64,000 nt of DNA from Podarcis bocagei. Taxonomy: Eukaryota. The stretch lies in assembly GCA_964188305.1 (NCBI GenBank), contig OZ076890.1; one strand, given 5' to 3'. A program made the translations under genes and the position numbers. This document shows positions 3,771 through 40,246 of the stretch, one piece after another (positions within the stretch are counted from its first letter, which is position 1; every line of letters starts with the position of its first letter). The notes beneath the pieces are model-generated. The model saw only the letters and a program-made list of their open reading frames with translations, had not been told where the DNA came from and did no database searches.

Positions 3771-6698
3771 GTTGCACTGGTGCACACAGCAACTGGGGCA
3801 GCTTTAGATAATTACTAGAGTATGAAAGTGCATGTGTGCTACAACAAATACAACATATGGTATTTATTTCTAAAATGGTCCTCTAACACACAACAGTGGC
3901 ACTTTATCTAGCTTTTATAGTCATCCTGGATTGGGATCAGAAGCTACTGCAGCTTCTGCCAAACCAGGATGTTCTGCTTAATACGGGACACTTGGAGGGT
4001 ATGTGAATGCAACCAGAAATTAGCTTTCTGATTTTGCCCAGATTCCATCTAGTTAAATCTCATTTGTCCTACAGTTGCCTCCCTAAGGTTTCCAAGAAGT
4101 TAACAAATAGGGCACAAATAGTTCCACTCCCACACCATTTGTGCCTGAGAAACTAATAGTCAGAGGCTTACTACCTCTGAATTTTTAGTTCTCTTAGCAA
4201 AAGGAGTACCCACGTAGGAACAGGAAGCCTGGCTTCAACTCAATTATTCAGGCTTAGATAACTGTACAACTTCTTCTGCAATTAAATGAAGTGTAAAGAA
4301 TTCATTCAGCTCCTCCACTCTTTCCCTGTCCTCCTTTAGCATCCTTTTGCACCTTTGTCATTGAAACAGTCCACACCTGCTAGAAGCAGGTATCCAGCTT
4401 TTGACAGATTTAAAGAAATGTTAATTAACTTAACATTTCTAGCAACGTGTTCTTGTGATTCATTTTTGTTGTTTGTCTCAAATGCAACTTACACTTTTAA
4501 GTTCTTTTTTGTTATCTTACTTGGGCAAGACTCGTACATGGTGATTTGCAGAGCATCCTTTATTCTGCTCATTAACGACACCGACCTCCTCCAGAATTAA
4601 TCCATGGCATTCATTCAATCCAAACTTCTACTATAGTGGTTTTAAATAAGCTTCAAATGCCCTGAAAAGATGTCACTTTCTTGACTTTCCTTTTCAATTC
4701 CCTTATGAGGGATTACCTGAGATTTGAGAAGTTTCCACTCTTGAAACTAGATATAACTGTGCTGAACTTTCAGAGCAACGTTCTACTTATAAATGGATGA
4801 GTCAGTAGTCATTGGTTTCTACACAATGGCCAAATTCTGTGATGTGAGTGTGTATCCAGTTACTGTAGTCATAGAGTGGAACTAATGCTACCACCATCAT
4901 AGGAATTGGAGCATCAATATATATTCCACCCACAGGAAGCTGCTCAGCACAAATACAAGCTCAGCTGGGGCAAGGATCTAGTCTGCTTTTATGGGTTTTT
5001 CAAGAAAATCATGCAGGGTCAACTCATGTGCAAACTAAAATGGAAATGAAAATTCCTCTACGGTTTTGCAATCTTCTTTGCACGTTGCAAAAGTGGGGAG
5101 GCATGATCTGTCATTTGGGACAGCTGCCAGACAATTTAAATATATATGAAGAATGTCCCTAGGAATGACACTACGTCATCACTACTGGGACATTCTCAGT
5201 GAGAATGTCCCGGGACTTGCTGTTTGTTGCAATTCTGTTACTGCTTGGAGTGGCAGGAAAGCTTTTTACCCACCGTCTCTCTACCACAATAAACTCCTCG
5301 CCCCAGAAAGGATGAGGACCCTATGTGTAGCTAAAGTCCCCAAAGTATCTCCCATTTTCACAGGAGACCAGTAGCCTGGTGAAAGTGGAGTTTATTTTCA
5401 GTCAAGCATTTGCATGTGTCTGGCATTTTCATCAGTAGAAATCAGAATTATCATTAGACTTTTTCCCCCCGTGAATGGGGATTTCCTTGAGAAATATTTT
5501 AGGAAATAATTGGCTTAATATATGTTTTCTTTTATTGCGGAATGTTGCTGAATTGTAATTCTAAGTTTTAAGATTCTGTATCATTGTTCCTTTTATCTTT
5601 TGTTTTTAATTGTGAGATATTTTGGACGGGCATTTGGTCAGAAAAGCTGCTTAAAATATTTTAAATAAAAATAAAAATGTATATCACAATAAAACTTTAA
5701 TTAAATATGATGCTGTTAGGAATAACCTTATGCCACTGGCTACTTAGATTTTTGTAGATGGAAGGACATTATAAAACATAGTTTCAGCTGGCCAAAATAA
5801 GTATTAGTTTTGTCTAGCACTGCAGAGCCTTTTAAAAATAACCCTTGTTTCTGCCTCCCATCATAGATGTTGACAAGTTGAACGAATGATTCCAAATAAC
5901 CCAAGGTTAAGTATTTCATGTACAGTACTACCCATATTCCTATAACATAGCAGTTCTATCCAGAAATATCACTGTAATCATTTGATTAAATGATTGAGTG
6001 AAACACTCATTCTGTAAAATGACTAAAAATTGCACTCACCGATCAATGATGGGTTTTACATTATGAACAAATGGACATGTTAAAATATAATGAAATGTAA
6101 TATCATGCTGTATAAGTACATTATTAATTGTATGAAATGATAAAAATTGATCACAAAGTGGGCTACATGTCCCATATTTATTCTGAAATATATCATTATA
6201 TGAAAAGGATTATGTGAAAGAAAACTGATGGGCACTGAGTTCGTTTCGGTTGCAATTAGCTGCGGTTTGCCAAATTCATATGAAAAATGTGCTAGTATAA
6301 TAATAAAAAATAGCATTTAAGTATTGTAAGATGTATTTTAAAGAGTAAGTACTTAACTAACAGGGTTCATGAACCTCTGAAGCCAGCCTTTATAGAGTTC
6401 TTGCTGTAAAGTGCAAATTAATTAGATATCAAAATGCCACCTGCAGTGAATAAAATCCCTAAATACTTAAGTGGGAACAGTGCATTAGCCAAGGTATTTA
6501 GGGGAACAAATTCTTCTGTAGTACTCTTCTTATAAGTAGTAACGGAAGGCTGAAAAGGATGCTACAGAAATGATTAAGATCCTCCTTGATGAAATTCTTT
6601 ATCAGTACCTAAAGTACAGGACATTTCCCTGTGGTTCTTAGCTAGTTCTTAATTATAGTCACCTATCCACGCACCTAAAAAGATGGGGGGGGGGGCCT

Positions 6699-8985: not shown

Positions 8986-10868
8986 AATTATATCAATTAA
9001 ACTGTAATAAGATTATGAAGTCTTCTTCATACAATTTGGAATGATATATCAACAATATATATGAAGTGTCTCCAATTACACAAAATGCTTAACCCTACCA
9101 TGGATGCAGACCAATACCTTCAGCACCCACCATAGGGCAATAACAAAACAGCCACATTAGAAAAATTGCTTTGGTGAAGCCCAGTTCACCAGAACAATTG
9201 TGAATGCTTAGTTTTGCCATCCCATTGACAGGTGACTAATGTACATCCATAGCAAGGTGGGTTGGGGGGAGGGAAGGCTGGGCCTCCTTTTGCAGGGTGA
9301 GAGTGGAACAGAATGGAGAAGTTCTGATCTGCTCCAGAGCTGTAATTCCATGGATTTAGGTGACAGAACTAACTGGCCCAGAGGCAAGTCATAAGCTGTG
9401 GCCAAACAGTAAGCCAGAGCAGATGGATGCCTGAGGACTCCTGCTAAGCCAGGACCTGTATCTTGTATTCCTGCATCTTTCTCAATTATATAGCAAATAG
9501 AAGTAACCCAATATTTTCAAAGTCTCAAACATTCTTTATAATGTATGTTACAGTGACCACATGCTTTGACTGATTTTCCCACCCTTAAGGATCATTTTCT
9601 TTTGATTATCTGCAATGGTATCAAGTTTGTTTCATGATTCGCAGTATGGATTATCCTGTTTTTCATCTGCTTTTCTTTCTTTCTTTTTCAGTAAAGTCAT
9701 ATTCTATGTTAAATTACAGAAGTCACTCAACCAGATTAAATGTCACTATATCAGCCTCGGCGGTGGATCAATGCTGTAAAGGCATTCAACCTGATAACAT
9801 TAATCCTTCACTCTCTTTGGTATCATGAGTTTGATTTCCCAGTGAGAATTTGAACTTGCAAGAGATGGCAGTGATAGAAGTGTAAATCTCTACAGTAATG
9901 CCAGTGAAAATTTATTCTTAGTAGGTGGAATAAGAAATGGATTAGAGTGTATTCTTATGAATGGATCACCCCCTGGCTGGATTAATGTAGTGAATGGTAT
10001 TTTGGATGGTGATTGTGATTTTTGATATTTATTTATTTATTGTAAGGGAGATGGGTTTGCCGCATTTCGGCATCAGGAGATGGGAAGGGTGCTTGAGGAG
10101 TCTTAACATGGCAGCAGTTCAGATTTTTTTTTAAAAAAAATGAAACAAAAACAAAATGCAGAACAACAAGATGTTCTGCAGCAGCAACTATAGCTGCCAT
10201 ATCTATAGGTGTCATTTTCCAAAGGTATGTTTTCTTCTTCTTCATAGAATTCCTGCTGAGAGAAAGTTCCATGATGTCCAAAGGGGTTAGCCGCCTCTGA
10301 CGGCAACCCCAGCACTAGCACACAACCCTCAGACCACCTCAGTAATACTCTTAAATATATACTAATATTTTTTGTTTTGTTTTGGGGAGTTTTGAGGATT
10401 TTCTACTAAAAATCTACCTGGAAACAGGACAGGGAAGACTTAATTCCCTCCCCTCTGAGAACTGGGATGGACCAGATTTTAATGGACCTATCTATTCCTT
10501 CTGATACGCGAGTTGTGACTCATCTAAAGGGATTTGACCACGTGCTAGTTATTAGTGCTAGGAATGAACTAGTTTACTAAACCAAACTTTACTTAACTAG
10601 TTCAAAAATCTCTGAACTACACCTGAAAGTAGTTTTCATAATTGCTGAGTGAACAGAACATGAATTAAGTTCATTTTGGGGTAGAAAGCTGAATGATTTC
10701 TCTTCAAATTCATTTTCTTACAGATGTTTTTTTAAAAACACACACACACACTAAAACACTCCAGACTCTTTTAAGCTTACAGATCACAAGTGAAATGAAT
10801 CGAACAATTCACATTCCACTGGTTATGCGTTTTCATATTTTCTTAGACTTCAGAATAGCATATTGTAA

Positions 10869-17821: not shown

Positions 17822-19321
17822 TTATTCTGAGCTCAATAATATGGTTAATTAGAAGAATGCCTAACAATCTGTCCTCCCTGTCCTAAGACGAACCAACATT
17901 AATTCATCCTCTGCCACCTCCCAGCAGAGGAAGAGCTCCAAGCTAGCACACTTTTAAGGTCATTCTTAAACCTTAGGCGTCACACATTAATTACATGAAG
18001 AACAGAGGGACTGTGCAGCTGTGCTTTTGGCTATACCCCTGTGGCCTATGGTTTCTCTACCCTTGCTCCCCAACCTATGTGTTAGGTTGCCCAATTGTAG
18101 TGATACTTTTATGTGGAATCTTTCTGCTAAGAGGAAATACAAGAAGGCTTCCTTGACTCAGACACCCATGTTAATTCATGATTGACAGGGTTAGGGTGAG
18201 ACCAAAAAAGGTCACCTGACTACTCACTTTTCCTATTTGCATGAGTAATGTGTGGCAAGACTTTCAATGGTCATATTATCTATCCATACACATCACACTT
18301 CAGAAAGTCTCTCATGTGCATCTCTCCTCTAGCTATTTCCCCTCCCCTAAGCAAATGCTCCTACAAAGTTTGTGATTCTCTCAAACCAGCCATCAATTCT
18401 GCTGAAGGACTAGGTATCATTATGATTGTGCCACATGCAACTGATTGCTAGCAGGATTGTTGCAAGTTTTCAGGGCGAGTTCTAGGAAGCCCTGGGCACA
18501 ATGGCATCCAGTGAGCCCCTTCCTATGTTACCGGGCCCTGGTGGGTTTACCTGGTATTGGTGATCTGAACAGCACCTAGCTGTTGGAGGGAAGGAGAAGC
18601 AAATAATTATTTGAACTTCTCACAATTTCCCAAAGTGATGCCATGTTGGTTACATGGTGGAAAATTAAAATGGAAAGTAAGTCCATCTGTCAGGTTTTAC
18701 ATAGAGTGCCAGACCAGATGATGATGATGATGATTTATTTAGAGGGGGCAGAGATCAGCAGTGGGCTCTGTTAAGAGCTGTTCAAGGGTGGAATGGCTGG
18801 GTGCTAGTCACTTCGTTTGGTAAGAGCTGTTGCACGGGTGATCAAATGTTTTCAGTAAAATGTCTTCTAAAGTCCACTTAGAAGCCATAGGTCAATAATG
18901 AAAAGCTATGTAGTGTACACATCTTTTGTAGGATGTGACTTCACAAAATTGTGGGATCTGCTTCATTTCATTTCTATGGCAACAGGCATTTCCTCAATTT
19001 CTTCCATTTCTGCTTAACCAAAATCTAAGTAAGGGTGCAGTCTGATGAAAAGGAACAGAATTTAAGAGAGGCACACCTCACCAGAAGAAGACTTCTGCTG
19101 GAACCCAGCCCTCCACTGTTTGCTAGCAATAAGAAAACTCATCCTGTGGGTGGTTTGAGGTCACTAGGCCTATTTACCTTCATTGAAAAGTGGAATTGTT
19201 GACATAGTCTTTTTCTGCCAGGGATAATTAACTTCCCATAACCCCAACCATAAAATTATGCTGAAAATTTTCACCAGGAGACATGTGGGGTTGTAGTGCA
19301 TACACATCTCTTGCTACTAAC

Positions 19322-19793
19322 TGTTAGTATCTCAGCTCACAGGCAGAGGTACCTGGCCTCCCCCAAGGCAATTAAGCTGGATACTTGATGACCTCTCCGC
19401 TGCGTCTCCCGGCAGGCTAGGTCATAACTCCGGCGATTCTCCTCATCAATCAGACGTGAAGAACACACCCTCCGCTACTCTGCTTCTCTCCCCCTCCCTG
19501 CATTCTCCCAGGGAGGAGAAATGAGACAGACAGGAGTCCTTTCTACATGTTTATTCCTGTCACTCAACAGTACATAGAATTGCATCTGTTCCCTTCAGAC
19601 TCCATCAGAAGAGACTCACACTCCTCCCCTGTACTTCCAGCACAGGTCACATGACACTCTGAGCTAACATCTGGTGCTCAGTACAGAGAATAGGCTCCAC
19701 CTTTTCCCCAGCAGTACAGCAGCAAACCACAACATCCTGTTTTGCATTCCAGCAATCTGGAGCTGGCTTTTGCATTGGTGCTTTTTCCCAACA
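19322..19793 (-). repeat. 3' LTR of the copia element
   Basis: Direct repeat of 22903-23374, with 5 transitions and no indels by manual alignment. Minus-strand AATAAA at 19550-19555; E-box/M-box GTCATGTGAC at 19646-19655. Confidence 0.96.
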
Positions 19794-22316
19794 TCCTCCC
19801 CCAAAAGCATCAATTGGCAAAACATGATCCAGAGAAGAGAACAAACAGTTGTTATACATATAACAGTCCCCTGTTGTTTCAGTTCCACCCTTGGAACTCC
19901 CCACCACTAGTTTCACCAATGTACCTCTCTGGTTGTCTGGCTTCCAAGGAATGAGTGCTTCTGCATTACCTTGGTTAGCTACTCTCTGTTGTGTCTTTGT
20001 CTCTGACTTAGACACTGCTTTAACCTGCTTTGAGTTGTTAACAATAGCAACACATGCAACAGCTAAGTTAGCAAACTCTTTTGAGTACCTCTTTGGTGGT
20101 ACACCCTTTGTAACTCTCTCAGACCTGCGTATGAGGTTCTGATCCTCTGTGCTCACTGGTTCAACCTTTGGACTCTGTTGAGAACCAGTAGCAATGGCTA
20201 ACAGTGGTTCTTCCTTCATCTGTGAAGGTCTATCCATTGTGTGAGATTTTCTCTCAATGACTGTTACAACTGAACTCTCTGAGCTATCAGTGTCATCATC
20301 ATCAGTACCACTGTAATCTGTGACATCAGAAAAATCATCATCATCATCTGAATTGCCACCTGTGGGAAATGTGTGTTCTCCTACCCGCTCTTGTTCGGGA
20401 GCACTCTCTAGAAACTTTGTGAGAATCACCTGACCAGATTCAGACAAAATTACTCTGTAGAGACCCTTTTCATAACCCACAAAAATGCCTCTGGCATTCT
20501 TTACTCCACCTGGAGCTTCTGTTCTCACATGAGACCCGAAAACCTTAAAGTAGGCTACAGAAGGTTTTCTATTGAACAGCTTCTCAAAAGGAGAACATCC
20601 CAACTCTGTTGAGACTTTTCTCAACCACACATGAAGATAGGACGCTAGCGATTCGGCCCAATATTCATGTGGCAAATGTGAACTCAGCAATTGCGCATGC
20701 ATCCCCTTTTGCAATTCTTTGTTCACTCTCACACAGACCCCCCTGTTCCACGCTTCGGTCGAAACAGCAATTTTGTGATCTATCCCTTTTCCATCCAGGA
20801 ACTTCTGAAACTTCTGTAACAGAAAAATTTGCTTCTCATCTGTGAAAAGACAATCAATGTTAGCATCATGCATACTCTTAACCTTGTCACAAAACTCCTG
20901 AAACTTTTCTAAAGTTTCTTGCGGTTTCTCCATCAAATAAACCCAAGAATAATTAGTGAAACAATCCACACACAAAAGGTAATATTTTGCACTGCCCCTA
21001 GATGGTTCTAGAGCACCAATCACATCAGCATACACCCGCTGAAATGCTTTGTCGACTTTCGGCACCTTCCGGGCGCTCGTTTTGGTCACACCTGCAAGAG
21101 AGATTACGTTAGAATCAGAAGAATTGCATTTCATGTAATCACTTTGATCAAAAGTCAACAAATACAGTCCATCTTTCTCTTTGGCAGTAAGAAACAGTTC
21201 TCCATCTTTGTAGATCTTGCAGCTTTTAGCATCATAGGACAGTTTCAGTCCTTTCTTTGCAATCTGCGACACGCTCAGCAGATTAAATCTCAGTTCCGGA
21301 ACCAGGTAAACATCGCTTATAGTCAAGTTCAGACTCTCAAGATTCACAGTCCCAATTCCGGTTGCTTCCAGCTCTTGACCATTGGCCTGTTTCACAGTGA
21401 AGCTTTGCTTCTTCAACGTCGAAAACAGTCCTCTGTGCGGGCATAAATGTTTTGTGCATCCCGTGTCGATTATGAAGGCGTTCCCAACATCTGGCGTGGT
21501 TCCTTTCGCCATCATAGCCTTTGCAGGTTTCACCTGGTACTTGGTACGGCTTTTGCCTGACGCCTCAGGCTTCGTAGAGCTGCTCTTCGCTCCTCTTGAC
21601 TGGCGCGGCTTCTTACAGTTTCGCTGTAGATGCCCAATCTGTCCACAATTATAGCATTGGACAGCACTCAATGCTGTAGCATGCTCTGCAGTAGCATCAG
21701 CAGTGGGAAGATTTGAACTCTGTTCTACCCTCCCCCTGCCCTTCACTTCCAGTGCAGCAAGTCTGTCGTGTTCGTTCAGGACGACGGCACACACTCTTTC
21801 CGCGGTTAGGTCCTGAGCCGGTAGGGAACCAAGCTGACTGGCAACAACCTTGTAGGTGCGATTAAGGCTGTTTATCATCATGAAGCAAAACACTTCCTCC
21901 TGAAGACGGAAATTGCGCTCCACCATCTGTTGACGCAGAAACTTCATCTCTGTCAGGTGCGCTTGGACATCACCATCAGGCGCTAGTCTCAGATTGGTCA
22001 ACTTCTCAAAATACAGCAACGCTGAAGAACCAGCATCTCTCTGATGCGTTGTACGCAGCGTATCCCAAACCTCTTTCGCGTTTTCTAAATACTGGATATG
22101 CACCAATTGCGCGTCTGAGATACACAGTATTATAGCAGTCCTGGCCCTCACGTTCTGTGATTCCCAACCTCTGGTTGGTGCTGCAGGGATGGGGTTTTCA
22201 ATTACATCAAACAGCCTCTGATTCTGCAGCAGGGCCTTCATCTTTACAGACCAAGATGAATAATTGTCATTATTTAGGGGAGGTGGGCAAGGCAGAGCTC
22301 CCTTCTTGGCATCCAT
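19647..22316 (-). CDS. Copia Gag-protease-(degenerate integrase) polyprotein, 889 aa
   Basis: First ATG at 22316 in strong Kozak context (AAGATGG); the ORF track start at 22490 is a TTG. Copia gag N-terminus LNNDNYSSWSVKMKALL; zinc knuckle CYNCGQIGHLQRNC (21615-21656); aspartic protease FIIDTGCTKH (Asp 21465-21467) with NLLSVSQI; integrase core RVYADVIG / YYLLCVDCFTNYSWVYLM / FTDEK / WAES / FKVFGS..GIFVGY; RRSER motif. No YVDD-type RT motif. Confidence 0.93.
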   Translation of the reverse strand: MDAKKGALPCPPPLNNDNYSSWSVKMKALLQNQRLFDVIENPIPAAPTRGWESQNVRARTAIILCISDAQLVHIQYLENAKEVWDTLRTTHQRDAGSSALLYFEKLTNLRLAPDGDVQAHLTEMKFLRQQMVERNFRLQEEVFCFMMINSLNRTYKVVASQLGSLPAQDLTAERVCAVVLNEHDRLAALEVKGRGRVEQSSNLPTADATAEHATALSAVQCYNCGQIGHLQRNCKKPRQSRGAKSSSTKPEASGKSRTKYQVKPAKAMMAKGTTPDVGNAFIIDTGCTKHLCPHRGLFSTLKKQSFTVKQANGQELEATGIGTVNLESLNLTISDVYLVPELRFNLLSVSQIAKKGLKLSYDAKSCKIYKDGELFLTAKEKDGLYLLTFDQSDYMKCNSSDSNVISLAGVTKTSARKVPKVDKAFQRVYADVIGALEPSRGSAKYYLLCVDCFTNYSWVYLMEKPQETLEKFQEFCDKVKSMHDANIDCLFTDEKQIFLLQKFQKFLDGKGIDHKIAVSTEAWNRGVCVRVNKELQKGMHAQLLSSHLPHEYWAESLASYLHVWLRKVSTELGCSPFEKLFNRKPSVAYFKVFGSHVRTEAPGGVKNARGIFVGYEKGLYRVILSESGQVILTKFLESAPEQERVGEHTFPTGGNSDDDDDFSDVTDYSGTDDDDTDSSESSVVTVIERKSHTMDRPSQMKEEPLLAIATGSQQSPKVEPVSTEDQNLIRRSERVTKGVPPKRYSKEFANLAVACVAIVNNSKQVKAVSKSETKTQQRVANQGNAEALIPWKPDNQRGTLVKLVVGSSKGGTETTGDCYMYNNCLFSSLDHVLPIDAFGGGCWEKAPMQKPAPDCWNAKQDVVVCCCTAGEKVEPILCTEHQMLAQSVM
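19794..19802 (-). other. Polypurine tract (PPT)
   Basis: Minus strand GGGGGAGGA directly abuts the TG of the 3' LTR. Confidence 0.9.
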
Positions 22317-22870
22317 CTTGAAGCCAAGCCTCCAGCTCACACTGTCAAGCAAGCTGTAAAATCCAACAGTCGTTTCCTGCCTTTCTCTTTGCAGGCAAAC
22401 TGCAAGTTGTTTATGCTCTTTGCACCTGGCAGCAAAACGCTGGCTGCTACAGAAAGTCCCTTTCCAAGAGCACGTAAAGCTTGTAGCCAAAACACTCTAT
22501 GGCTTAGTTTCGCTTTCCCAGCCTCACAATGCAGCTGCGTAGCCAGTAACTTTCCACTATCGTTACTTAGCAAGAGTGCATTCAGGACTTCTTATCTTAA
22601 CCACAGGAATTTGTGGAATGCAGGCTTCAGCTTCCAAGCTGCAGGCCTTTTCTCCCGGAGCTTTTGTTTTTCAAACGCAGAGCTCCCGTGAACCAGGGAA
22701 TTAATCAACCTGCGTTCACACTTTTAGCCCAAAATGCAGCAGCATACCTTGATCTCCGTTGCTTGGAAAACACCTTCCTCTGGGTCTGTTCAGCCTCTGG
22801 CTTCTGTCAGACACTTGCCTTCTCCCTTGGAGCAGAGGAGGACATTCCACCAGCCTCTCATGCAGATGTC

Positions 22871-22900
22871 CGATGAATCGCAACCATCCGAAGGCTGCCA
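22871..22900 (-). other. Primer-binding site, split and extended, complementary to initiator tRNA-Met
   Basis: Begins 2 nt after the 5' LTR: TGGCAGC-CTTC-GGATGGTTGCGATTCATCG, versus the complement of the vertebrate tRNA-iMet 3' end TGGTAGC-AGA-GGATGGTTTCGATCCATCG. Confidence 0.85.
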
Positions 22901-22902
22901 TA

Positions 22903-23374
22903 TGTTAGTATCTCAGCTCACAGGCAGAGGTACCTGGCCTCCCCCGAGGCAATTAAGCTGGATACTTGATGACCTCTCCGCTGCGTCTCCCGGCAGGCTA
23001 GGTCATAACTCCGGCGATTCTCCTCATCAATCAGACGTGAAGAACACACCCTCCGCTACTCTGCTTCCCTCTCCCTCCCTGCATTCTCCCAGGGAGGAGA
23101 AATGAGACAGACAGGAGTCCTTTCTACATGTTTATTCCTGTCACTCAACAGTACATAGAATTGCACCTGTTCCCTTCAGACTCCATCAGAAGAGACTCAC
23201 ACTCCTCCCCTGTACTTCCAGCACAGGTCACATGACACTCTGAGCTAACATCCGGTGCTCAGTACAGAGAATAGGCTCCACCTTTTCCCCAGCAGTACAG
23301 CAGCAAACCACAACATCCTGTTTTGCATTCCAGCAATCTGGAGCTGGCTTTTGCATTGGTGCTTTTTCCCAACA
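22903..23374 (-). repeat. 5' LTR of the copia element
   Basis: TGTTGGG...CTAACA on the minus strand; CCAAT, TGTGGTTT (RUNX-like), GTCATGTGAC (23227-23236) and AATAAA (23131-23136); no clear TATA box. Confidence 0.96.
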
Positions 23375-24835
23375 CTAACATCTAAGATACATCTAAGAAA
23401 TGAGACTGGTTTTCTGCACAGTGTTTGTACTGAAGAAAAAAGTAGCAAATTAGGGGCTGGAATAAAGGCAGCAGAAGAGACCTGAAGGTTTTTGTTTCTA
23501 GTTTGAAAACGGTTTTATAAACATGAGGGGTGTGGGTGTCTCAAGGCACACTGTTTTCATTGGGGAACTGGTTCATAGAACAACACAGTCTGATTTGCCA
23601 TGCTCAATGTGTACATTTATAAATAAACAAAGGGAACATAAGTCACCAATGCTGTCTGTTATCGCAAAGAAACAGATCCTGTAAAGAGGCCAACCGTAGA
23701 ACTTTCTAACACTTGGGAATAGGGAACCTCCCTGCTTTGTGTAAGACTATTGCAACCTTACTTTTCACAGCTGTTGAAAACTTGGGAGACATGGACTGCA
23801 AGCCGACTGATTGTCTTTGGTTGAAATTATACCTTTCTAGTGGAGAGTTGTACATTAGGAAGTGGACAGAGCTCACTTAGTTAATGGAGCACTGGAGTTT
23901 TCGAGTAAACGAAACTAATGAATCCCTGTAGTGCTGGCAGGGCTAGTCACTGGCCCAATAACAGGTGGCTAATTGGCCCAGCTGGGACCAAATATGGGCA
24001 ATGTTAGCTAGTTGGCAAAGGAGCTGCATAAATCTGCACTGATGGCTCTGGAGAGAGACAAAGTTCTAGGGGAGGGGGAAGTTAGCCTGAAGGGCAACCT
24101 GGGGAATTGAAGGGGATTCAATTTGCTTCTTAGAGTTAAAAGTTGTTTTTAAGATATGGTTGACTGTTCATATCTTATATGATATGAAATTAAATATTTT
24201 ACATTGTTAAACTTTGTTTTAGCAGTAAACTGAAAACTTAAGATGAAGTATCTGGATCTTCTAATGGACTTGGCTGATTATTATTTTCTAGCTTTTGTTC
24301 CTTGCTCTGGTCTAGAGGTTCTCTGTTATGAATGATGAAGGTTTTAGTCTGATAATCACCTCCTCATACAATCAGAAATTCCTGCTGCTTCTATATTTCT
24401 GCTAAATCTAATCACCTGTGAGCTAGAAAGGCTGAGGAGAGATGTTTGACAGTCCTTCCCTCCTCTCCCCTGGAAGACAAGCTTCACCAATTTGCAGCCT
24501 TTTCTTCCCACACGAGGCTTGCAACTGGGACTTGGTTTCCAGCCTTTGGGTTGCAATGTGATTGTAAAACCAAAGTTGGCCCAAATGCCTGTTCATAATT
24601 GTAAATGTCTCCTTTTAACAACAAATCCGATGTTGACATACATAAATTACAAGAGAGAGGCTCAAAGGCAATTCGAGCCTCATGCATGAGTATACAGCTC
24701 ACAGGAGAGGAAAGAGATTTTGTTTTTTAGCAGTTGTGGGGAAAGCTCACAAATGTTAGTGTAACTGTGCAAGGGAAGTGGGGTTGCCTTTAACTACACT
24801 GAAATTATTCTAATGCTTCTGCTTCCAGATGGTTC

Positions 24836-28480: not shown

Positions 28481-30160
28481 CCAAGTGCTGCCTTTAGGTA
28501 GCTTTTTATATTCTACTATGGTAATGATATTACTAATCATCTTGTAAAGTTCAAATGCATTGTTATGAATCTGGGGCTGCAAGACACACTAAATTCATGC
28601 TTAAGTTAGTGGTAGAATTTAATTTAGGTTTGTAGTATTAAAGCCAGGAAATAACCAGTCTTTAGGATAGACCCAAGTGTGTATTTGAACCGTGCTACAC
28701 CTTGCTAGTCATTTAATTAAACCAAGCGCTAGATATAATTACGTCAGAACTGGCCTCCTGCGTGAATCAAAGAAACTTGCCTGAGAGGGAAAAGAGGTGG
28801 GGCCCTTTCGGCTGGAGAGAGAGAAACAAAGAGCCTAGAGAAGGGAGGGGAAACAATGTTTTAGAATCAGATTCTCAAACCTTTATTGGCATATGCACAA
28901 GATTCTAGAAGGTGTCTGTTTGAATCAAATGCTGTGCTTATGGAGAATACAAGACCTTCTTGGAGTGAAATGATGAGGACCCCTCCACTGTAGCCTCAGG
29001 TTGTATATATGTGGAAATAAACCATAAGACACCACAGTCTCCTCCATGCCTCACTTTCCAAAAGGGAACACAGACCCTGGGTAAGTGCCTGGAACACCCT
29101 GGAATTTTGTACTGTTGTGGATATTGGGAGTGGCATGTAGCTGTACTTACTGAAGGCAGGATGGCTGATCAGTAGCATTTCACAACTAAGCCAATCCAAT
29201 TATACAGTTAACTTTATCCCTGAATGAAGGTGTCAGATCTATTTGTTTTCCGTTCCTATCCTGCAGCCCTGATAATTCAGTTGAAGAAAGATATTTCAAA
29301 GTCCAATGAGGCTTTTATTGGCCCAGCTTTTGCTGCACAAATCAGCAAGAGGAAAATGAAATTTTCCCAGGAAACATTTGTTTCCAGAGAGAAATGGGTG
29401 GAGGAGACCAGGCATGTTTCTGCCCTATCATCAGTCACCTAAGGCAGATGACCTACCTGACCTAACCACAGGGCTATTTTTCTAGATAAGGAGTCAAGGT
29501 TTATCTATGAGCCATGCCATATTGTCAATCAACCTCTTCTTTTCCACAAAGGCAAGTAGTTGCATTTCTGCTTGTGAAGAGGCAGCCTCTTGGGAGCAGT
29601 GGGTGCTTGAAAACTGTGAATAAATTAAACCAGGTAAGATTTTGCAGGCATCCTTATTGAATGGTTGCAAAACTTCTAAAAAAAAAAAAAAGCCTATGTT
29701 TATTCAGCAGGAATGCTTGCAAATCCTAACTGATTTTCAAGGTGAACCAGAACATGTAGAGGAAGGGAGGAAGCAGCAGCAGCTACTTGATTTCTCATAG
29801 GTCCCATTTAGTTACTCAGGATGCAATCTATATTCCCAATCCCCATCCTAGAGAGATTTGATGGACACATTCCACCCAGTGCAGAACAGCTCCATTGACC
29901 TTTGTCTGTGGAGTTGTCTTAGTATCATGAAGCTTCCTGTTCCACCCACTTGCGAGCTTGGCTTACTGCTGAGCATTTTGGAAGCAGATAGGTGCTGAGT
30001 TGGCTCATGATGCACTGGATTCTGTGGTGGGCCCACTGAATCCAATTGATGGCATTGGATCTGATCACTACACCATCTTGCCTTTTGCTCTAGCTGGTGT
30101 GAGCAACAGGGCCATAGCAGTGACAGCTATGCCACTCCACTCTACCCAGATGGCATTTGG

Positions 30161-30536: not shown

Positions 30537-31547
30537 ATGGCATTTGGACTGTCATCCTAAACACAGATACAAATTTGCTAAGGGGAAAATTGTGAGAAAG
30601 TTAGCAAACTTAAGCCCTCCACCTGTTTTTTTTGTTTTTTTTTGGTTAAGCAGATGCTTAATTTATCCCCATAAAAACCAGTAGTTTAAAAATCATTCAT
30701 TTTGGGTGGATCATGTCCTACAATTTGAATGGCCATTCTTAAGGCGCCTTTAATTGGCCCTACAGGCTCAATGTGGTTGCTAAAATTGCCAGATTATATA
30801 ATTGGGATTTGAGTGCTGCGTTTGCTGTGACACCATAGGTTGTTTCCAGTTAAAAATGCTTTATATATCTATATGACAGTTTGGAGCATTTAAATATTTC
30901 TGCTGGGTTCCATTTGCTGAAATATAGCACCGAGGCAATCAACGGTACAATTGCACCATTCAGATTTCTACAGCCCCTGGCTAGCCATAATACAAATGAT
31001 TCAACTTTCCTCAGCAGTCTTTATGACTTACAGTTACAGTCTATAATACTGCGGCACTAAACTTCATCCTCCTATTCAAATTACTTGCAAAGGAAACCAG
31101 AAATAGCTGGGACAGTCACAAAACTGCCAATATCAATATTGCCAAGAAAAAGCTAGCTGTCCTCTAAGAATCAAAATCAACTGTAAAGCAATTTGGACAT
31201 TTTAAAACAATTTCTATGAAAAGTTAACCTTGGCTTTATTAGAAATTTGAATCAGAGAGATATTAAACCATTTCAAAGCTGGCATTTTTGGGGGGATGTA
31301 GTTGACCTATGGGGGTACCCATGCCTTGATATCAAAGGTCTCTGGAACCAATTAAACATAACCAGATGCAGAAGTGAATAATATATATGCTGGTTTTTTT
31401 AAATACCCACATTTGTAATGTGTCATATATTCAATAAGCCATACTAGATTAGAAAAGGTGATTTCATAAGACTATCTTATATTAGGTACTAATGCTGCAA
31501 TGTGATCTACAGTTATTCATTATTTCAAGAGTTTCATGTAGAGGCAA

Positions 31548-32248
31548 GTTTTGGTATCTTTCTGTCTTAAGAGACAATGGAGTGCACCTATGGGGGTGAA
31601 TCCAAACTGCTGCATTAGCAGCACCGAAGTGACCTCTCTGGGGCACAAGCCTGCACTGAGTGTATGGAGGTCCTCAGCTGCCCAGAGAACAAGACCCCTC
31701 TCTTTGCCATGTTGCTGTGGCCCAAAGGAAAGCAGTGCAATACATTTGGCACCAGCTTGGCTGCAGAAGTTGTCAGAAGAAGGTATAAACATGCCATCCA
31801 ACCATCCTAAGGACTCAACTCTGGATTAGTGTAGGGTTTGCTCCTTAGCCTTTTCTTCTAGAGAATATATTGTGCAAGGCAGCAGAAATTTAGGGTCAGA
31901 GTTTTCTTCTTCCCAGGTTGATGAGCCCCATCTGTCCCTTACTTCCCTCTACAGCACATGCAGAAACCGCCTTCTTGACTGTTGGACCATATTATCTGCT
32001 CAATCCACTGAAGCCTGTCTTATTGTGCAGAGGAAGTGTCTGACTCACAGAGGATTTGAGACTCACTAACTATTCACACCTGGTTTAGCCAGCCAGTTGA
32101 AGCTGGCTGCTGTTGCATGCTGACAATTTCTAGGAGCCACAGGTGAGAGCTGAGTGCAGGGTGGGGACCAAAGGTAGATAAGCTACCCTGGAAGGAGCAC
32201 AACAAGTCTATCACCAGAGGTACTCCTCTCCCCTCCCCAACACCCCAT
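31548..32248 (-). mobile_element. Non-autonomous (bipartite) RTE-clade element, near full length (~700 bp)
   Basis: RTE-type 3' tail fused to ~600 bp of non-coding sequence; homologous to 965-1483 and 38425-38500. Confidence 0.7.
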
Positions 32249-38424: not shown

Positions 38425-38500
38425 CATGCCATGCTGACCATTTCTAGGAGCCACAGGTGAGAACTGAGTGCAGGGTGGATACCAGAGGTGGACAAACTAC
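38425..38500 (-). mobile_element. Fragment of the RTE-derived element 5' region
   Basis: ATGCTGAC.ATTTCTAGGAGCCACAGGTGAGA.CTGAGTGCAGGGTGG is near-identical to 32117-32165. Confidence 0.75.
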
Positions 38501-40246
38501 ATGCTCTCTAAAGGAACCTCAGTTACATGTCAGTGAACATTTTCTGCCCACCATGCATTTTTGCAATTTCAAAGCCATTTAAACTACAATTTGGGCCTCT
38601 TCCAGACAAACTGTTTAATGAACATTGAACTTGATTGGTTGCTACTTATTGATTTATTGATTTGCAGGAAGGTTACATCACCCCACACCCCACAATCACT
38701 ATCCCACACTTTCCAGTACATTTTCCTGTCACTTTCCTTACTGCGAAAGGACCATTGAGAAGAGCAGGTTCCTTGGGCAAGAGCAACAAATCTGGTTTAA
38801 CTGTACAACCTGGATTTGCCATTGCACAAGTCAATTCCACCCGCAAAATATTGACTGCCTGGAAAGCACCTTGGCATTGATAAATTCCAGAACTTATATG
38901 TTACTGGCCTTTGGAGACTGCTTTTTCTGAAGCAACTCTCCCTCTTCCTGTGATATATCATCACAGGAAGGAAAAGACAGTGGGATGATTAGTGAAACAA
39001 AAAGAGAAAAGGTCAGGTTTCAGGACCTTTTCATTCCTATTCTAAGGTGCATGACGCACTGGCTGCCAGCATTCAGTCATCTTATAGCTAATGAATCACT
39101 TAAAATGATAAAACTAAGCAACTAGCTGCGTCCTTGATTGTGTGGGGGAAATGCAAGGGAAATTTTTTCAAACAACTAATTGTTCCTGTTTTGAACTGTA
39201 GTTATATCAAAGCTAATGACTAACTGCTTGAGAATGTTGATTTTCAATGGAAATAAAAGCTGACTGTGAGTATTGACAATACTGGCATTATATCTCTTCA
39301 TTTAAATAAGGATTGTGTGACCTTTTATTTTCAGAGATGGGATCGGTGTGGTGTTACTGCTCTTAGGCACATTGCTGGTGCTACATAATGAAAAGAGTTG
39401 CATGCCTTGATGCTCTATAACACAGGTGACTTATTGGGAGGTGTGTTCTTTTCATTTCCAGTAAGCCCTGCTTTGATCGCTTATCTTTTTCACCCAAGCA
39501 ACTGTGAGTCACTTAGACAACACATCACATCACATCCTTGTGGATCCTCAGTATTTTGGAGGACAGGGTGCATAGACAACTGTTGGATATTTGTTGTGAA
39601 TTATGTGGGTTGATCCAGAAGTGGTTGTAAGGGAGCATGACCAGTTCATTTGCACTGGGCATGGAACCTTGGGGAGAATGCCACAACTATGCTTTAGAAT
39701 GGAGCATGAGAATTGGAGGGTGCTGAATTTTGGCATCACACAGGGCACCACTGAAATTTGAGAACCCAAGTGTTCTTCCCGAACAGGGTTCAGTTATTTA
39801 GCGATAGCAAATCTCTGTGTTAGTATTAGGGAGAAAGAATAACAATGCTGGCCCTCTGAGATAAGATAGTGTCCCCCCACCCCAATTTTATACCTCAAGC
39901 CAGGTTGGGAAAATACCTCCCTTCTATTGGCTCTGGTCAGAGCAGGAAGAAACCTCCTTTCCTCCTTTGTAATCTAGTGGCAGTCTAGTTATGGCAAACC
40001 AAAGAAAAAGGGTGAACTCACTTTGTCCTTACAGAGCTCCACAGAAAACTTCATAAAAAGCTTCTAACCATCTTCATTCAGAGCCATAGAACAGCCTATT
40101 GGAATGTGAGTAATATTTCTACATGTGCCTTGATTATCTCTAATACATCTATGTATGAGAGCTTTGTGGAGTCTTATTGATACTATCCAGAAAGAAAACC
40201 TCCATACGGAACACCAAGGTCTGCCATTAGTTAGGCTTAGGCTTTG

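Follow-up and report, generated by a model that had tools for sequence, protein, structure and literature searches.

The primers of LTR retrotransposons, as surveyed in plants, comprise the whole tRNA 3′ end, a 5′ half-tRNA and a self-primer, with no 3′ piece among them (PMC6317226). When a half-tRNA is used, cDNA starts from the 3′-OH of nt 40 (PMC1181622). Ty1 needs boxes matching the T and D arms, located 3′ of a 10-nt primer-binding site (PBS), for both primer packaging and initiation (PMC3592414, PMC4974528). In retroviral priming m1A58 acts as the plus-strand stop (PMC8599865), and m1A gives rise to both arrest and misincorporation by reverse transcriptase (RT) (PMC4787781). The site described here lies in a Ty1/copia element that lacks an RT and pairs, with interruptions, with tRNA-iMet from position 76 to position 41.

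Results

The window, i.e. the whole 64-kb stretch of DNA analysed, carries on its minus strand a young RT-less Ty1/copia LTR retrotransposon. Direct-repeat detection and alignment of the LTR pair place the 5′ LTR (472 nt, TGTTGGG...CTAACA) at 22903–23374, and the same alignment places the 3′ LTR at 19322–19793, both on the minus strand; the two align over 472 nt with five transitions between them (98.9% identity). The target site duplication (TSD) GTTAG flanks the element on both sides (19317–19321 and 23375–23379) and the polypurine tract GGGGGAGGA (19794–19802, minus strand) abuts the 3′ LTR. In four public runs, each labelled as a different organism, contigs of the empty site join 19315 to 23374 and skip 4058 nt, showing that the insertion is absent from those runs and confirming the boundaries of the element. 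A 947-aa open frame (19647–22490, minus strand; Gag ATG at 22316) encodes copia Gag (Pfam PF14223, PF13961), a zinc knuckle (PF00098), a Pol beta-barrel protease domain (PF22936) and an integrase remnant of SH3 type (PF25597), and its protein matches come from Podarcis wall lizards. The copia-type Gag/protease/integrase order, the TG..CA LTRs and the 5-bp TSD all identify the element as Ty1/copia. The Pfam search of the frame found no RVT_2, hence no RT, and the element is therefore a non-autonomous Ty1/copia derivative, as had been proposed in a first-pass annotation made from the letters alone.

A 61-aa ORF (22716–22901, minus strand) takes its start ATG from the spacer and the PBS; neither exact nor word-sharing relatives of it were found in the protein collection. 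Elsewhere in the window, two direct-repeat pairs of ~75% identity lie 30.6 kb apart (954–1317 and 31533–31921) and represent an unrelated dispersed repeat.

Pairing was assessed against human iMet (sequence from PMC8216282 and PMC12775451), with which lizard iMet is taken to be identical on the strength of the perfect matches in four of the elements discussed below (L003, L001, L007 and L009). The site occupies 22902–22863 on the minus strand, 2 nt past the terminal CA of the 5′ LTR; the spacer is TA (22901–22902), relatives having spacers of 1–2 nt. The acceptor segment TGGCAGC (22894–22900) pairs with iMet 76–70, with C opposite A73, where relatives read TGGTAGC. It is followed by an unpaired CTTC (22890–22893), forming a 4 × 3 internal loop that faces U69-C68-U67; AGAG stands in its place in L003, L001 and L008 and is paired there. 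Pairing resumes in the T-arm segment GGATGGTTGCGATTCATCG (22871–22889), the complement of iMet 66–48, with G opposite A58 at 22881 and a U·G53 pair at 22876. A bulged G (22870; A in L003) then separates the complements of C48 and U47, and ACATCTG (22863–22869), with A opposite G45, forms the complement of iMet 47–41, a stretch that takes in the variable loop and reaches the top of the anticodon stem; complementarity ends there. All these segments lie on the minus strand, and together they pair 30 of the 36 tRNA positions from 41 to 76. The first-pass annotation had described an iMet PBS extended into the T arm, with pairing to 76–70 including the C:A73 mismatch, a CUUC/UCU loop and pairing to 66–48 with one G·U and a mismatch at A58. 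This layout is exact and the extension is borne out, with 19 nt against 66–48 and then 7 nt against 47–41; the latter pairing, past the bulged G, is an addition to that description.

The site is the strongest match to antisense iMet in the 64-kb window: it scores 19, where 2000 shuffles gave a mean of 8.1 (sd 1.5) and a maximum of 16, and a 17/19 match would arise by chance with a probability of ~6e-9 per site by our own arithmetic. Neither ARAGORN nor Rfam detected a tRNA or a known RNA family in the window. Its other antisense-iMet matches (9338–9460, 29978–30100 and 38438–38560) are gapped noise. We also considered TATGGCAGCCTTCGG as a thrice-deleted PBS for the 5′ half and dropped it, as it was not significant at any gap cost. 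The LTR segment AGCAGAGTAGCGGAGGGTG (23047–23070, minus strand) is similar to the 5′ end of iMet in sense orientation (1–8 plus 14–19) or, alternatively, to the complement of iMet 74–62 with two G·U pairs. We regard this likeness as chance, since an estimated ~0.2–1 such matches are expected per scan and the segment is absent from the L003 LTR.

Set against the known site types, the window site begins as a Pseudovirus-type site does, where priming is from the tRNA 3′ end (CA, TA, TGG, with TGG within 0–5 nt of CA), but the at least 8–10 contiguous nt of that type are reduced to 3 + 3 pairs split by C:A73, followed by the loop. A T-arm complement lies 3′ of the PBS as in Ty1. A scan of 22300–23380 for the D-arm complement of the Ty1 type gave only runs of 8–9 nt, a size expected by chance. 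The half-tRNA complement of hemiviruses ends at nt 40, whereas that of the window ends at 41, on the other side. The 18 contiguous nt before m1A58 of the retroviral type are not found in the window; the first block of L001 fits them exactly.

Duplex energies were calculated with parameters for unmodified RNA, so that tRNA modifications are ignored, and discriminate weakly. On this scale the window site and iMet form a duplex of -40.4 kcal/mol, compared with -27.3 +/- 3.8 for shuffled tRNA (1 of 500 shuffles was better). Other tRNAs reach -27 to -30 kcal/mol against the site, which equals the shuffled background, and therefore add little. The first 19 nt of the window site alone give -17.5 kcal/mol, as against -33.6 for the canonical 18-mer and -40.4 once the extension is included; the gain of cofolding over separate folds is ~15 kcal/mol with the extension versus ~3 without. 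Within the weak statistics of such energies, it is the extension that would carry binding in the window copy.

Relatives were collected by an exhaustive protein search and by contig look-ups, and the window element was aligned with L003, L008, L001 and L004. L003, from the P. lilfordi assembly GCA_947686815.1, is 91% identical to the window element in protein and 84% in nucleotide sequence and has an LTR of a different subfamily. Its LTR is followed by TGGTAGCAGAGGATGGTTTCGATTCATCG-A-ACATCTG, a contiguous complement of 76–41 with T opposite A58. L008, from the same assembly (61% Gag identity), reads TGGTAGCAGAG-TTGC-TGGTT-GGGG-CGATTCCATGGACGTCTG. L001 (GCA_963506605.1; 43% protein identity) has an RT-less architecture like that of the window element, and its site consists of a perfect 18-mer TGGTAGCAGAGGATGGTT (iMet 76–59), then GAGCTC, then TGGTTTCGATCCACGGACCTCTG. 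L004, from a Logan contig (46% Gag identity), reads AGAGGATGGTTT-GA-CGATCCAGTGCCCTCTG and is without the first seven letters. By our count the paired positions within iMet 41–76 number 35/36 in L003, 34/36 in L001, 31/36 in L008 and 27/36 in L004, next to the 30/36 of the window. The sequences of L002 and L006 fall short of the PBS.

The complement of the T-arm segment is kept in L003, L008, L001 and L004, and the complement of 66/63–41 persists in elements with only 43–61% protein identity to the window. The end point is position 41 in all five elements; the next letter is unable to pair with C40 and beyond it the sequences diverge. Blastn found no similarity between the leader of the window element and those of L001 or L004, the alignment being confined to the coding region. 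Pairwise identity of block versus flank was not informative, 60-mers aligning at 0.5–0.65 under lenient gaps. As the complement and its end point are shared by four relatives at 43–91% protein identity, the extended PBS is a maintained property of the clade. Within it the part facing the T arm and variable loop is constant. The acceptor part varies, being degenerate in the window, deleted in L004 and duplicated in L001. Perfect matches to iMet directly after the LTR run to 23 nt in L003, exactly 18 nt in L001 and 11 nt in L008, and these satisfy the contiguity of the Pseudovirus type. Thus T-arm complementarity, which the first-pass annotation had proposed to check among copies, is retained, but neither the split nor the G opposite A58 is a fixed feature: the letter is T in L003, L001 and L004 (with GA inserted in the last) and GGGG in L008. 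Both the split and the G are private to the window copy or its subfamily.

An RT domain was seen in none of the sampled members of the clade (window, L001, L002, L003, L004 and L008; the relatives with 38–91% protein identity to the window ORF). The frames of the window element and L001 hold Gag, protease and an integrase remnant without RVT_2, and the L002 product holds rve without RVT. The pattern suggests a lineage of considerable age that has long done without an RT of its own.

The nearest RT-bearing copia elements recovered were L007 and L009 (P. lilfordi; 33% identity) and L005 (32%), with RVT_2 present in L007. All three have a classical internal PBS, GGTTATGGGCCCAGC, which is the complement of iMet 26–40 and thus the half-tRNA PBS of hemiviruses. 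The two types of site, 26–40 and 41–76, adjoin exactly at 40|41. In L007 (5840–5905) and L009 (5838–5905) a U5 box, CCCAGCAA(A/G)CTCTCTGCAGCGCTACCA, is similar to the complement of two parts of iMet, the D arm and the acceptor strand on the 5′ side; judging by these matches, most of the 5′ half could be held by U5 box and internal PBS together. L007 also carries a repeat array with a period of ~84 nt (3892–5080) upstream of its copia element.

Discussion

The explanation that we favour, and consider probable, is that of a clade whose PBS is complementary to iMet 76–41 and in which priming by an RT acting in trans is anchored by the extension. Such a PBS matches the whole 3′ portion of iMet, from 76 down to 41, instead of the usual 8–18 nt. 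In the window its acceptor-stem part has degenerated to 6 pairs in 11, so that most of the binding would come from the 27 nt that face the T arm, the variable loop and, in the anticodon stem, its first three bases. The long duplex would hold the tRNA with its CCA end 2 nt from U5, and minus-strand DNA synthesis would start from that end once RT was supplied in trans. Annealing and priming presumably occur, the extension would be kept by selection for pairing and the window copy would still be primable. The comparative data, with 66/63–41 kept at 43–61% protein identity, fit the 'selected T-arm anchor' that was one branch of the first-pass annotation.

One rival to this explanation concerns the window copy and not the clade. 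The feature could be functional in the clade and the window copy dead at its PBS. C at 73, CTTC in place of AGA (both in the acceptor part) and G58 would then have no role and would have arisen either when the copy itself was reverse transcribed or within a sublineage that was dying out. We think this unlikely, although it is the strongest of the rival readings. The acceptor parts of L003, L001 and L008 are perfect, the first 19 nt of the window site bind poorly alone and the variant is seen in no other copy. No second copy of the TGGCAGCCTTCG variant was recovered, either by exact look-up or by word searching with the 61-aa ORF, and so the window PBS may be a private and possibly disabling change. 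Metagenome contigs scanned for GGATGGTTNCGATTCATCG yielded only 20 chance bacterial matches without PBS context. On the other hand, at 98.9% LTR identity decay since insertion predicts, by our estimate, well below one change in 38 nt (<<1), so the variant came from the source RNA or from the copying event. In the same direction, though weakly, none of the 40 listed of 569 places where contigs carry other letters lies inside the site. Moreover, an older version of the PBS in L001 also begins TGGCAG, and C opposite A73 may therefore be an old, transmitted state.

That older version lies past the 3′ LTR of L001 (6848–6908), where a second PBS-like block, GTGGTAGCAGAG-TTC-TGGCAGAGCTCTGGTTTCGATCCACGGACC, is followed by poly-A with no visible TSD. 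It starts with the same TGGCAG as the window variant. The block may belong to a tandem or recombinant element, or be an aberrant end with a copy of the primer.

Lesions at the 58/59 junction bear on how the extension is kept. The window has G for T, L008 has GGGG for T and L004 has GA inserted directly after T58; in L001 the perfect block ends at 59 and the complement resumes after an 11-nt insert, while L003 is clean. These are four independent events among ~19 lesions over 36 positions (~0.04 by a crude Poisson estimate), and the three largest indels in the block all sit there. Across four lineages such clustering is suggestive only. It would fit either an unpairable m1A58 or an RT that stalls or errs there while copying the primer. 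In the former case the letter opposite A58 would be free to change, because m1A58 cannot form a Watson-Crick pair. The point made of A58 in the first-pass annotation thus survives in a weaker form, as lesions at 58/59 in four lineages, and not as a fixed G opposite A58.

If RT erred while copying the primer, the extension could be a by-product. RT would read through m1A58 during plus-strand strong-stop synthesis, strand transfer would write a copy of the tRNA into the progeny, and the extension would be refreshed repeatedly, with the lesions at position 58 as RT errors. Recurrent re-copying of this kind could keep the extension without selection for pairing, and we regard it as improbable though worth weighing. 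It accounts for the perfect 18-mer of L001, which ends exactly at 59 with an insert and then an older PBS-like remainder behind it, for the differently joined PBS version past the L001 3′ LTR and for the clustering of 58/59 lesions in four lineages. The exact 18-mer beside the older remainder argues that these elements do, on occasion at least, acquire a copy of the tRNA. Arrest and misincorporation at m1A (PMC4787781) and the complementarity of lentiviruses past 18 nt, up to one nt before 54, which has been interpreted as tolerance of read-through (PMC8599865), point in the same direction. However, Ty1 and Ty3 are reported to inherit their PBS strictly, without tRNA copying (PMC7472051). States that do not derive from the tRNA are shared and inherited here also, such as the T that the window and L003 both have opposite G53, and the lesions at 49/50. 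Moreover, read-through is expected to reach the next block, t6A37, but all copies stop short of it, at 41, and the segment 76–59, which should be the most refreshed, is the most degenerate part of the window copy.

The first-pass annotation had also raised an RNA switch, in which the hairpin GCAGCC-UUCGGAU-GGUUGC hides the PBS until the primer is loaded. The hairpin is present in the predicted fold of 401 nt, but its 5′ arm exists only in the variant letters private to the window copy and the local fold has z = -1.5, with 12 of 200 shuffles folding at least as well; we consider the switch unsupported and very improbable. Least probable of all is the same annotation's fossil of a single ancient read-through, captured and now decaying neutrally: read-through would indeed be expected to leave antisense tRNA immediately 3′ of a PBS (PMC8599865), but a neutral capture would be erased over a divergence at which the same segment and end point persist (43–61% protein identity, with the leaders of L001 and L004 unalignable), and the block is therefore maintained.

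Returning to extension-anchored priming, the meeting of the two site types at 40|41 leads us to a tentative proposal, itself rather unlikely and drawn from the sequences. The site of the RT-less clade may be built for the 36-nt 3′ piece of iMet (41–76) that the candidate helper discards, or one tRNA may bridge helper and parasite RNAs before it is cut. In the bridging variant, a tRNA shared by the two RNAs would tie packaging to priming. The data fit a whole tRNA bound over 41–76 and a fragment primer equally well.

Comparison with known systems

Complementarity beyond the acceptor stem has been described in retroviruses (HIV-1, the lentiviruses, the U5-TΨC contact of RSV), where an 18-nt PBS has extra contacts and likewise reaches past A58 into the T loop, but in lentiviruses it stops one nt before position 54 while the lizard site reaches 41 (PMC8599865). 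Other retroviral contacts lie in U5 (PMC3592414). None extends over the T arm and variable loop into the anticodon stem. Ty3 likewise combines an 8-nt acceptor match with T- and D-arm complements for iMet in a bipartite PBS; unlike in the lizard site, the second part lies at the opposite end of the genome (PMC4974528). The hemivirus type (Drosophila copia, 1731, Ty5 and Osser) shares with the lizard site the copia superfamily, iMet and the pairing of one side of the tRNA. It pairs with 26–40, the 5′ piece, whereas the lizard site pairs with 41–76 and starts at the CCA end. We know of no element complementary to the whole 3′ piece of iMet, and a literature search of incomplete coverage found no description of such a PBS.

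The closest system is Ty1, of the same superfamily and with the same primer, in which a short acceptor match is also followed 3′ by T-arm complements. The first-pass annotation had likened the site to these extra contacts of Ty1, and the T-arm complement 3′ of the acceptor match bears the likeness out. The boxes of Ty1 (0, 1 and 2.1) are short, 6–7 nt, with spacers of up to 28 nt and a D-arm box among them, whereas the lizard site is roughly one block of 36 nt without a D-arm box. Moreover, the lizard site lies in the untranslated leader, ~585 nt before gag, and that of Ty1 inside gag.

If the extension amounts only to a stronger form of the Ty1 boxes, it would extend the Ty1 mechanism from yeast to vertebrates. 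The repeated lesions at A58 may offer a natural read-out of the effect of m1A58 on PBS evolution outside retroviruses. A PBS matching the 3′ piece in full and adjoining the known cut at nt 40 would suggest a fourth way to use iMet, next to the three recognised primer types, and points to a way in which a long-lived RT-less lineage could share the primer supply of its helper.
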